From Salpingoeca rosetta (taxonomy: Eukaryota > Protista > Choanoflagellata): DNA of 64,000 bases. The first letter of the stretch is position 1. Each line of letters starts with the position of its first letter. The position numbers and the translations under genes are program-made. The stretch covers positions 861,865-925,864 of the forward strand of contig JAWQFM010000002.1 in the NCBI GenBank assembly GCA_033442325.1. The letters are read 5' to 3'. This document shows, one piece after another, positions 42,170 through 47,495 of the stretch. The notes beneath the pieces are model-generated. The model was not told where the DNA came from and did not search any database. It saw only the letters and a program-made list of their open reading frames with translations.

Positions 42170-45100
42170 TCAGCAGTCGGGACAGCGCTAAGCACATGTT
42201 TGCATATTTCAGTGCACGTTTGAGTTGTGTGCGTGTTGATAGATGGTGTTGGGTGGCAAGCGGAGTCACGAACGAGCATGACAGCACTGATTCACACCCG
42301 AAAGTAAACGTGATCCACTGCTTCCTCTTGGCTTGGTTTGCCACACGACCGCCGCAGTCCAAACACACACACACACACACACACACCTGGAGAGCGTTTT
42401 CGTTGCACACGGAGCACTTGAGCCACTCTTCCTTGGTGGATTCCCCAAAGCCGTGCAGCAGACTGCGCTTCGAACCTGTGCGTGACGGTGAGAACAATGC
42501 GCCTGAGTTAGGCATGCAACGGCAGGCAAGACACAGCAGCAACAGACAAATGCACAGCATCCACAAGGGCACAACACGACGACCCTACACCGTCCATCCA
42601 CATCACCATCAAATCAAAACAAGCATTCGAACATCTCATCCGCTCACCTTGACACCAGGTGCACAGGATGTAGCCCTGTCCACCGCAGGTTGTGCAATCT
42701 GTGAGTGGTCGCTCCTCGCAGTCCGCCAGCCGCCGCCGCAGCGCACCTGTCTCGTTCATCTCCTTCAACGCCTTCGCATCCTGAGGTCGACACCACACGA
42801 AAACGTGTTGTGTGTGCATGTGTGTGTGCATGCATGTGCGTAATGAGCATCGCCAAGAATGTTCAAGTGACATTTTAAGAACGTTCCACACATAGACGCA
42901 CACACACACACAGACATGCTTGCGTGACACATTCCGTTCTCTGCCCTACCCCAAGATGTCTGCCTTCCAGAAACGCTTGCGGAACAACAGCACCGGGCAA
43001 CCGGCGCTCTAACTCGCTTCTCGCCTATCACACACACACACACACACACACACACACACACACACACACAAACAATTGCATGCGTCGAGGAGGTAAATGC
43101 GTGTGAACAAGTGTGTAATTGTTTGCATGGTTGCATGTACAGAATGTGAATTCGCAGCATACATTCTTGATGGTGCGGTGTGAGAGGACACTGTTGAGTG
43201 CACAGGTAAAACTCAGACGCGCGATGCGCTACCTGTTTGTCCATGGCGATGTTTCGAAGGTCGACGCGAACACGAAGGTTGTAGAAGAGCTGTTGGCAGC
43301 CATGCACACATTCTTACAGACGCGTTAGATGTGATGCAGCAGACTGTATGTGTTCATGCTTCGCACACACATGCACGCACACACTCACACACACGCGCGC
43401 GCGCGCATACAAGCGAGAAAATATGTGCACGATCACGAACCCACCGCCTTGATTTCCTCGCAGGCTTGGAAAGTGTCACGAATCGCTGTTGTGTTTGTGA
43501 CATAGAGCACAACGCGTTTGGTTTTGCTCTCCTCCTTCAAACAGCAAAGCAGCACACAAGACAGCGTTTCTCGTGAGCGCTGAAAGAGTGGAGAAGGGCA
43601 GGAGGTTCAAGAGCAATCCGCCCTCACACACACACACACACACACACACACACACACACACACACACACACACACACACACACACACACGCAATAGTAAG
43701 CAATCGAGCAGCGAAGGCTCAGATGCGCACACTCACGTCGAAGAGGCGCGAAAGTTCAGTGGAGGAGAGCAGATCGTATGTGCTCTTGAGCTGTTGCAGT
43801 GTCTTCCGCACGCCGTGCTTTTTCCCGCGAATTGTTCGCGCCTTGTTTCGTTTGCGCACCATAATCAGCTGATCCTCACCGCCAACGCCCTCGGCCACGG
43901 CCACGTCTACAAAACGCAGGCGATTATGATGACGGCAGACGTGTGTGCAGGACAATGGCGCGAAGGCTGAAAGGTCAGCATATAGCATGTGAAGCTGATG
44001 AAGATGTATGTGTTCAGATGTGAATATGCATGTGTGTTGAACATGCATGCGTGTGTGTGTGTGTGTGTGTGTGTGTGTGTGTGTGTGTGTGTGTGTGTGT
44101 GTGTGTGTGTGTGTGTGTGTGTGTGTGTGTGTGTGTGTGTGTGTGTGGTGGGGGTCGAGGGGTGCAAGGGAATCATGCAGCAGGAGAGTACACACCCTGG
44201 TCTGCTGTTGTTGGCTGTCTTTCATTTGTGACTGCACCGCGCGACACTGTCCGCAATCCCGCTATTGCACGCGTGATCGCACGAAGTGAGCAGTGAGTTG
44301 CAGAAAATTGTTGCAGGGATATCAGGCTTCAAAAGACAACAAAGGCGTGACATGATGACCGCATGCACGGTCACGTGCACACGATGATGTACAGTGTGCG
44401 CACACACGCGAACACTTGCGCACACACGAACATGAACACATACCCAGTTCCTCTGTTGGTGAGTGTTTGTGGTTCGAGGGTGAAGGTGACGATGACGGGG
44501 ATGAGAACGCTTCTGCCTGTGGATGCACACGTCGCTTCGGCGTGGTGTTTGTCCGCGATTGCGCAGACGGCACTGACACACTGCGCCACCCGCCAAGCGG
44601 AATGAGACAGAGAGCGAGCGAGCGTGTGTGTGTATGTGTGTGTATGTGTGTGTATGTGTGGTTGTGTGTGTATGTGTGTGAATGAGTGAGTGAGTGAGTG
44701 AGTAGGTATGTGTGTGTGTGTGTGTGCCAGCCAGCATGTCACGAAAGTTTGAGTTTGTGCATGAGCATGGCATCTCAAGCAAGGGTGCAACGCTGCCTGT
44801 GAACATACGATGGGGATGGCTGTTGTCCCCGAACAGGCGGTATCAGCGACAGCGGCCTACACGCGCACAAATTCACGCACATGCATGTATGAGTTATGAT
44901 CCTTCGTGGTGGGTCTGATACAAAGGGAGATGTACACAATGAGCTGCAAGAGTGCACACATACGCGTGTGAACAACGTGTGTCCCACCTGCGCGTGCGTG
45001 TGCGTGTAACATCAGCCGACGAAGCGGATCGTGCCTGGAGCTGTGGAGGTGCTGGCTGGCGGACGTCAACGTGGCTTGTGGCGCGCTGGCCCTGATCCTG

Positions 45101-47495
45101 TCCATACCCACCATGCACATGACACGCGCGCGCGCGTGTGTGTGTGCAGGTGTGTGTGTGTGTGCAGGTGTGTGTGTGTGTGTGCAGGTGTGTGTGTGTG
45201 TGCAGGTGTGTGTGTGTGCAGGTGTGTGCAGGTGTGTGCAGGTGTGCAGGTGTGTGCAGGTGTGTGTGAGTGTGCAGGTGGGTTTGTGTGTGCAGGTGGG
45301 TGTAAGTGCATGCGTGTGAGAGTACAAGTTTGTGTGTACATACACGTGTACGTGTGTACACGAAAACGCGTGCGCATGCATTGTAAGCTGAACAACGCTC
45401 ATGTTTGCACGAGCCCATTGGCACTGCTTGACGCCCACATGAGGCCTCTCTCTCTCTCTCTCTCTCTCTCTCTCTCTCTCTCTCTCTCTCTCTCTCTCTC
45501 TCTCTCTCTCTCTCTCTCTCTCTCTCTCTCTCTCTCTCTCTGTGCACAATCAGGGGTGCACCTTGCTGAAGAACATTGCGCGCCAGTCGTCTTCGTTGAG
45601 CCGCCGCATCACCGGCCGCGACGACGACGACGACGACGACTGCATTTGCCGCCCATTGGACGACGAGGCGGGCGCCTGGTGGACAATTGTGCAGGCGTTT
45701 GGTACGTGCGATGGTTGGCGTGGATTGTGTGTATGTGTGTGTACGGTTGTGGTTGTATTTGTGTTTGTACTTGTTGATGTATTTGCGTATGCACTTGTGT
45801 ATGCGTTGTGTGTTTGTGTGCTTGTATGACTGCGTGCATTCAAGGATGGCTCCCTTGCCGAAACGCACATGCGCGCGTCGCACACGTCCACTCATGCACA
45901 CACGTGATTGCACCTTGTTTGGCGTGGGGCGAGAAGTTGGTGCAACAACGCAGAATCCCCGCCGCACTGGTGGTGTTGATGTGATAGTGTGACAGGAGCC
46001 AAGGTAACAGTGAGGGGGGGGGCTGAGACAATACCGGCGTCCACGCGATCATTCATACACGCACTCACAGCAACCCAACACATACGTGCATACACTCCAC
46101 CACGACAAACACACAATGCACATGCTCACACGCACACACGAGCACACACGAGCACACACACACACACACACACACACACACACAAGCACACACACACACA
46201 CACACAAGCACACAAACACGGTCATAAATCGTTATCATCATCGTCACTTTGCACGGAATGTCAAAGTGTGTGAAGGAACGGACCTGGCTTTGCTGGTGCA
46301 CGCGTGGCTGATGGGTCGTTTGCTTGGTTCCTGCGCACCACCGCCCCAACTTTGGCATCGTTGTCACTGTCGTCGTCCACGTCACTACCGGCATCATCAT
46401 CGTCATCATCGACCACTGTCTCACCCTGCACCCAGTCGTCTCCGCCTGTTTGCAATCCGAAACCGCAGGGACATTGCAAATGATGAACAATGATGTGCTC
46501 GATGAAACGCGCCTATTCGAAGCGCGTGTCGTCTACTTCTGCTCAACAACTGCTCAACGACAGCACACGCACACATACACACACACGCACACGCACGCGC
46601 GCGTACAACGAAAGGTACCTTGAAGCTTGAAGCGGTTGAGTGCAGAGTCACGAGTGCGCTGTGTGAGGATGTGCGTGCAAGGACCCTCACCAGCAGATGT
46701 AAAGGCAAGAACTGCCCATCACACACACAAAACCGGGTTGACTGTGAGCTGCGCTGTGCTGTGCGGCCGACATGCCTTCAGACAACACAAATGCACGAGA
46801 ATGCACACGCACGCAATAATCACGTTCAGGCATACACAAAAACAGCGCCTGCACACACACACACACACACACACACACACACACACACACACACACACAC
46901 ACACACACGCACTCTGAAAGCGGTATGGTGTGATGGGGTAGAGGTGGCGTGCTGTGTATGAGGTGGAGCCTGGGGTGAGTTCGACAACATTGAACTCTTC
47001 CTCCTTTGCCTGGTCAAAGAAGAGCCTGTAGCCGCGCAGGGTGCCGTTGAGGCGGCCCGGTGGTTTCCAGGCCACGGTGATGGTGTCCGTTGTCACGTGC
47101 GTGGCGTGGAGACTTCGGGGCGCTGTCGGCACATCTTCCAGCGTGCGGCACGGCACTGGCTCCGTTGTTGGGAGCACGCCGGCCTTGGCTGCGGCGACGC
47201 GGTGCTGTCCTGTGGAGAAGGTCTGCACTGCAATCTCGTACTCGCAGTTTGGTCGCAGGCCCGTGATTTCGTGGGAGTCGTACGTGTCGTCCTGTTGGTG
47301 GGCCACAACAAAGGCGGCGAGGCCCTTGCGTCGCCGCAGCACGCGGAACGAGAACTTGAATGCGCCAGCATTGCGGGCGCCATGGGTGCTGCCGCCCACA
47401 ATGTCTGCCACCTTTGGCACGCTCCATGTCACGATGATGCTCTTGCTGCTTGTTGCTCTGGCCTGCACATTTGTGGCCACTGGCAACGACGCCAT
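42170..47495 (-). CDS. Protein with two fibronectin type III domains, a low-complexity linker and a GRXCR1-like glutaredoxin/cysteine-rich C-terminus (linkage of the two halves inferred)
   Basis: FN3: [21 protein letters not shown] and [56 protein letters not shown]: [92 protein letters not shown]. Confidence 0.7.

Follow-up and report, generated by a model that had tools for sequence, protein, structure and literature searches.

A choanoflagellate gene joining two fibronectin type III domains to a GRXCR-type glutaredoxin-like module

Within a 64,000-nucleotide stretch of the Salpingoeca rosetta genome (contig JAWQFM010000002.1, positions 861,865 to 925,864; hereafter the window, numbered from its first letter), positions 42170-47495 on the minus strand are one gene, PTSG_01173 (EGD80581.1/XP_004997142.1; UniProt F2U107). 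It carries the database title 'Fibronectin type-III domain-containing protein' and encodes two fibronectin type III (FN3) domains fused to a GRXCR-type module, a glutaredoxin (Grx)-like fold followed by a cysteine-rich tail. The fusion is common to all choanoflagellates sampled and is kept in both choanoflagellate orders. As to its function, we lean slightly towards a soluble, non-catalytic adaptor, whose Grx-like and Cys-rich module would bind partners and whose FN3 pair and linker would tether it to actin-based structures. The gene model and the two domain types have been public since 2013, when InterPro Glutaredoxin and FN3 were already listed for PTSG_01173 (PMC4054682), and the gene is unstudied: the literature searched held no paper on GRXCR with choanoflagellates and none on PTSG_01173. 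New here are the assignment of the tail to the GRXCR type, the persistence of the fusion across choanoflagellates and a three-member family in S. rosetta.

The fused gene and its choanoflagellate orthologues

A full-library HMMER search with the FN3 exon retrieved P0003, the 665-aa PTSG_01173 protein, with 100% identity over residues 1-193. Translated exon by exon, the locus consists of 16 exons and 15 introns, all of the latter GT-AG, with a coding sum of 1998 nt and a product of 665 aa; all exons, each in phase, are exact consecutive pieces of P0003, and the split codons all agree. The chain of plausible GT-AG exons by which an earlier note on this DNA, made from its letters without database searches, had joined the FN3 and Grx parts is borne out. 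The public PTSG_01173 on GL832958.1 measures 5326 bp, exactly the extent of 42170-47495. Its start ATG, at 47495, opens a 194-codon frame, its end (RCPDC-TGA) is at 42170, and the glutaredoxin-like sequence with the four CxxC pairs occupies the last six open segments.

The encoded protein comprises, in order, two FN3 domains, a disordered low-complexity linker of ~270 aa, a TIRGK motif, the Grx-like fold and a GRXCR1-2_C tail with four CxxC pairs. Searched as the full database protein, P0003 scored above the Pfam cut-offs for all three domain families: fn3 (PF00041) in two stretches (79.5 bits, 2.1e-22), Glutaredoxin (PF00462) over residues 520-584 (31.9 bits against a cut-off of 22.9) and GRXCR1-2_C (PF23733) over residues 615-665 (38.1 bits against 26). 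Exon 1 alone yielded both FN3 domains (1.4e-19), and the two cysteine-pair exons taken singly gave sub-threshold PF23733 matches to profile positions 1-16 and 26-40. The four CxxC motifs that the earlier note had placed downstream of the Grx-like fold (CTTC, CTWC, CSVC and CPDC) are all present, as is the ten-residue motif that it had read just upstream of that fold.

A hydropathy scan of PTSG_01173 found no signal-peptide-like or transmembrane stretch (maximum Kyte-Doolittle mean over 19 residues, 0.93), in agreement with the earlier description of the FN3 domains as lacking a signal peptide, and none was found in any orthologue. The FN3 pair is therefore most likely cytoplasmic, as judged from hydropathy alone. 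A secreted or membrane-bound FN3 protein was considered and rejected, the hydrophobic stretch being absent from every orthologue.

The same architecture (FN3-FN3, linker, TIRGK, Grx-like fold, four CxxC pairs) recurred in all five other choanoflagellate species surveyed. It was found in the genome gene models of Barroeca monosierra (P0005) and Monosiga brevicollis (MONBRDRAFT_25420, P0084), in two paralogues of Salpingoeca infusionum (P0058 and P0152, both 'type:complete' transcriptome open reading frames, ORFs), and in complete transcriptome ORFs of Hartaetosiga gracilis (P0151, 650 aa) and the loricate Didymoeca costata (P0153). Two environmental mRNA-like contigs (L008 and L009, ~2.1 kb) are intron-free and each hold the whole uninterrupted ORF with flanks; L008 ends in AATAAA and a poly(A) run. 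The linker retains a few short motifs between species, 18 residues of them besides TIRGKxxGVRK; TIRGK is invariant among the choanoflagellate orthologues (I481, R482, K484), and so are V-P-Q at the cis-Pro position and the G-x-x-x-G position within the fold. In an unrooted tree of eight C-terminal modules, an acanthoecid-like and a craspedid group were separated with 100/100 support, and the inner forks were unsupported. The architecture that the earlier note had called unusual is so relative to animals and plants, whereas among choanoflagellates the fusion is the rule.

Some of these sequences depart from the pattern. The M. brevicollis model P0084 looks faulty, stopping at ...LCTW near the position of the S. 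rosetta exon 14/15 boundary, without the rest of the tail, and so does P0005 of B. monosierra, in which an intron within the Grx domain is apparently read through and the second CxxC is missing. H. gracilis has in addition a 250-aa FN3-only ORF (P0018) that parts from P0151 right after ...SALNRFKTLG, where S. rosetta has its exon 2/3 junction. Because the divergence falls exactly at that boundary, P0018 is probably an intron-retaining isoform of P0151, and FN3-only products may exist.

The module and its relatives

In the HMMER alignment, C-S-Y-C of Arabidopsis GRXC5 stands opposite F-Q-A-C of PTSG_01173, so that Phe534 occupies the position of the nucleophile, the N-terminal Cys of CxxC or CGFS in classical glutaredoxins. 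The second Cys is kept as C537, which is invariant in nine orthologues. The nucleophilic cysteine has therefore been lost, in line with the earlier claim of a Grx-like fold without an active-site CxxC. PTSG_01173 thus shares with the GRXCR family the loss of the dual active-site cysteines and a Grx-like fold directly N-terminal of the Cys-rich tail, the fold being recovered both by PF00462 and by structure. In the AlphaFold2 model of residues 470-665, the predicted local distance difference test (pLDDT) is 85-90 over the Grx fold, and Foldseek with this model retrieved glutaredoxins and SH3BGRL3, the latter with a template modelling (TM) score by target of 0.81 and a root-mean-square deviation of 1.9 Å. 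A profile search of the C-terminal module against solved structures likewise placed SH3BGRL3 first (1.7e-9) and true glutaredoxins next (1e-6 and weaker), with the actin-interacting Aip5 further down. The CxxCGGxG part of the tail gave a weak profile match (E = 0.0017) to 'Embryo defective 2737', chain R of PDB 8xku (8xku_R), a protein that perhaps bears this Cys-rich motif too.

Membership of PTSG_01173 in the Grx-like plus GRXCR1-2_C (PF23733) family is supported by these sequence profiles. In the ESM Atlas, the clusters nearest to residues 470-665 were from Streptophyta and Arthropoda, with equal scores of 0.92, and the best structural neighbours were streptophyte clusters carrying PF23733 and PF00462 (score 0.92, TM 0.67-0.78); the GRXCR module is thus pan-eukaryotic, occurring in plants and arthropods, and the actin bundler THRUMIN1 of plants counts among its members (PMC8333275). 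Among the Atlas clusters listed, none with PF23733 has FN3, which agrees with the earlier statement that known GRXCR1/2 proteins carry none. The whole-protein Atlas search gave only generic FN3 clusters (0.77) and says nothing on the fusion elsewhere. A word search with the FN3 open frame yielded a 243-aa fragment from a relative and nothing else; one with residues 250-665 of P0003 yielded choanoflagellate-like proteins only. Most invertebrates have one GRXCR1-like gene, and it was from such a gene that GRXCR2 branched off early in vertebrate history (PMC6114524). Of the earlier label 'GRXCR1 homolog', the family assignment therefore stands, whereas the GRXCR1-specific part is too narrow, the family being pan-eukaryotic and the GRXCR1/GRXCR2 split lying within vertebrates; PTSG_01173 is at best a co-homologue of the pre-duplication GRXCR1-like gene.

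Four known systems resemble parts of the protein. Vertebrate GRXCR1 and GRXCR2, the DFNB25/DFNB101 stereocilia proteins, and their invertebrate GRXCR1-like relatives share with it a Grx-like thioredoxin fold without dual active-site cysteines, a bipartite tail of four CxxC pairs, a disordered region N-terminal of the fold and the lack of a signal peptide, but PTSG_01173 is set apart by its N-terminal pair of FN3 domains and a linker of far greater length (665 aa for the whole protein, compared to 254 aa for mouse GRXCR2; PMC6114524). Arabidopsis THRUMIN1, a plasma-membrane F-actin bundler in chloroplast movement, similarly combines a disordered N-terminal region, a Grx-like domain and putative zinc-binding Cys clusters that are needed for its function (PMC8566215). 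It differs in being anchored by N-terminal acylation, in lacking FN3 and in binding actin through its own disordered region, to which no similarity was detected in PTSG_01173. The redox-inactive Grx-like adaptors SH3BGRL3/SH3BGR, besides providing the best solved-structure match, share a Y-x-T-S-V...R-E pattern around the lost active site, but they are single-domain proteins of ~100 aa without a Cys-rich tail; the only SH3BGR (PF04908) match was to P0084 (19.1 bits, below the cut-off of 21), and the similarity is at the level of the fold only. Finally, the tail recalls the Cys-rich (CxxCxGxG) zinc domain of DnaJ/Hsp40 in its four CxxC pairs, two of which are followed by G-G-x-G or x-G-S, a pattern that suggests two zinc sites. 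PTSG_01173 differs from DnaJ in having no J domain, and Pfam DnaJ_CXXCXGXG had no match on the protein at E ≤ 0.01.

Exon layout, neighbouring genes and paralogues

All exons are on the minus strand. Exon 1 (46913..47495) encodes residues 1-194 plus one nucleotide, with FN3 domain 1 and most of FN3 domain 2, and exon 2 (46619..46711) the end of the second domain (ten residues) and a conserved segment of 12 residues. The intron adjoining exon 2 has the same position in relatives, of which P0001 reads through it and H. gracilis P0018 diverges right after the exon. The linker extends over exon 3 (46284..46445), with a G-DDW motif and the acidic part, exon 4 (45914..45966), exon 5 (45562..45675), with a conserved motif of 14 residues, and exon 6 (44988..45097). 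It continues through exon 7 (44809..44856), which has 48 nt or 16 codons, contains a run of 15 residues and is known from the annotated protein, the Ser/Pro-rich exon 8 (44444..44580) and exon 9 (44196..44261), with LRTVSRG. Exon 10 (43737..43906) contains the invariant TIRGK-type motif of 11 residues and the helices preceding the Grx fold; strand 1 and helix 1 of that fold, with F-Q-A-C at the CxxC position and C537, are in exon 11 (43445..43534), its middle in exon 12 (43233..43289), and the invariant V-P-Q and G-x-H-x-G in exon 13 (42950..43024). The last Grx helices and the first half of the tail (CTTCGGQG...CTWC; PF23733 positions 1-16) are encoded by exon 14 (42648..42780), a further ten-residue part of the tail (positions 26-40) by exon 15 (42387..42475), and RCPDC with the TGA stop by exon 16 (42170..42187). 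At least 12 of the 15 introns, within 42190-46910, carry a (CA)n/(GT)n run, the exons being the repeat-free segments, and one has a long (GA)n run at about 45445-45540.

PTSG_01173 lies between a divergent and a convergent gene. The former, a ribosomal protein L11/L12-family gene recognised by a ten-residue stretch in 47500-47960, starts ~450 nt upstream on the other strand, a layout suggestive of a short divergent promoter region common to the two genes. The latter (40962-42158, plus strand; 244 aa, no Pfam match) ends 11 nt from the PTSG_01173 stop, so the two 3′ untranslated regions must overlap.

A six-frame PF23733 search of the S. rosetta assembly (55.4 Mb, 68 contigs) uncovered two further loci, on contigs C22 and C8. 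The C22 gene (L006, G000:C22:212500-222499, about 3520-8381, plus strand) has both FN3 domains, TIRGKRHGVR, the Grx fold and the tail of four CxxC pairs. Because its introns fall at the same places as in PTSG_01173 (after YRFQ and after CQG) and it is closest to S. infusionum P0152 (up to 74% per exon), it is a second, old fused paralogue, a duplicate of the whole fused gene. The third family member, at C8 (L005, G000:C8:1126500-1136499, about 5142-1988, minus strand), has no FN3 within 7 kb upstream. It consists of a long, Q/T/A/S-rich low-complexity first exon ending in GTVVGKRGSI, where the fused orthologues carry TIRGK, followed by a single-exon Grx-like domain and a two-exon Cys-rich tail; a word search with its Grx exon gave no match. 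This FN3-less architecture is nearer to animal GRXCR than that of PTSG_01173. S. rosetta thus has three GRXCR-family members, two fused and one FN3-less.

Proposed role and alternatives

The adaptor reading draws on related systems. Mouse GRXCR1, a stereocilia protein similar to THRUMIN1, binds GRXCR2 and, when purified, has no Grx activity (PMC8333275); THRUMIN1 is an F-actin bundler that depends on its zinc-type cysteines (PMC8566215); and the GRXCR2 tail resembles a two-zinc DnaJ domain (PMC6114524). Because mouse GRXCR1 is inactive, the GRXCR2 tail is DnaJ-like and the cysteines of the actin-associated THRUMIN1 are needed, we infer that PTSG_01173 may be a non-catalytic adaptor. The Grx-like fold and its tail, probably a two-zinc, DnaJ-like structure, would form a protein-binding module, whose partners, by analogy with mouse GRXCR1/2 in stereocilia and THRUMIN1 on actin filaments, would be located at actin bundles. 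With the FN3 pair and the linker motifs as extra docking sites, the module would be tethered to partners in structures built on actin, the likeliest being the microvilli of the collar or the cortical actin of attached (thecate) cells.

According to the supplementary tables of Fairclough et al. (2013; PMC4054682), PTSG_01173 is expressed at 3-12 fragments per kilobase of transcript per million mapped reads overall, at 10.0, 9.5 and 12.2 in three thecate samples, 4.0 in swimmers, 4.2 in chain colonies and 6.7, 5.1 and 3.0 in rosettes, hence ~2-3 times higher in thecate cells. Antisense reads are almost none, and the gene is in the cluster 'upregulated in attached cells'.

Several points weigh against the adaptor reading. 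The higher thecate expression is not collar-specific; the tail is modelled with low confidence (pLDDT 48-65 in AlphaFold2), too uncertain for zinc geometry; localisation, binding and zinc use of the choanoflagellate members are drawn from other systems; homology is at the level of the family, not of animal GRXCR orthology; the fusion in S. rosetta itself is drawn from the gene model and from comparison between species; zebrafish Grxcr1 is reported to be an enzyme that deglutathionylates (PMC6284068); and some thiol chemistry might be possible with the invariant C537. The last two also favour a different and rather unlikely account, in which PTSG_01173 would have thiol enzyme activity: its C537, perhaps acting together with the Cys-rich tail, would deglutathionylate targets to which the FN3 pair and linker only deliver it. 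The zebrafish enzyme is described as controlling Ush1c-Ush1ga binding, and C537, V-P-Q and the G-x-x-x-G position are invariant in all orthologues; however, Phe replaces the first, nucleophilic Cys of CxxC, the 2-hydroxyethyl disulphide (HEDS) assay detected no activity of purified mouse GRXCR1 (PMC8333275), and by profile no solved protein is closer than the inactive SH3BGRL3.

We give similarly modest credence to a scaffold acting elsewhere than in actin protrusions, in membrane trafficking, theca or substrate attachment, or at the flagellar base. The attached-cell expression cluster fits such a role, as do the largely Golgi location of zebrafish Grxcr1 (PMC8333275) and the presence of the family in organisms without microvilli, but the two functionally studied branches, vertebrate GRXCR1/2 and plant THRUMIN1, both act at actin bundles (PMC8333275, PMC8566215). 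An annotation artefact, by which an FN3-only gene and a Grx-only gene (starting, for example, from the in-frame ATG in exon 10, M-VRKRNK) would be transcribed apart, is very improbable. That ATG exists, and H. gracilis has the FN3-only P0018; yet one open frame crosses 15 phase-consistent GT-AG introns, complete fused ORFs occur in four transcriptome assemblies and in two intron-free contigs, one of them polyadenylated, linker motifs are kept between species, and the point at which P0018 departs from P0151 is exactly the exon 2/3 boundary, as expected of an intron-retaining isoform. Alongside the full-length mRNA there may be short isoforms. Returning to the adaptor, a more specific form of it, which we regard as speculative and unlikely, takes FN3-FN3-GRXCR to be a choanoflagellate-wide, duplicated cytoplasmic scaffold of the collar, where the ancient GRXCR/THRUMIN1 actin-bundle module would determine how wide or how long the microvilli are, as GRXCR1 does for stereocilia, its coupling to membrane or adhesion partners being provided by the FN3 pair and the DDW-type linker motifs.

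Both GRXCR1 and GRXCR2 are deafness genes in humans, and whether their products work as enzymes or as scaffolds is still disputed; in plants, actin is bundled by the same module. Choanoflagellates have kept a version of it with additional FN3 domains that probably bind partners, and S. rosetta is genetically tractable, with collar microvilli of the kind commonly compared with the microvilli and stereocilia of animals. PTSG_01173 is thus a candidate, open to test, for a regulator of the collar or other actin-based structures; if it proved to be a collar scaffold, the link between GRXCR and actin protrusions would predate animals, with lineage-specific wiring.

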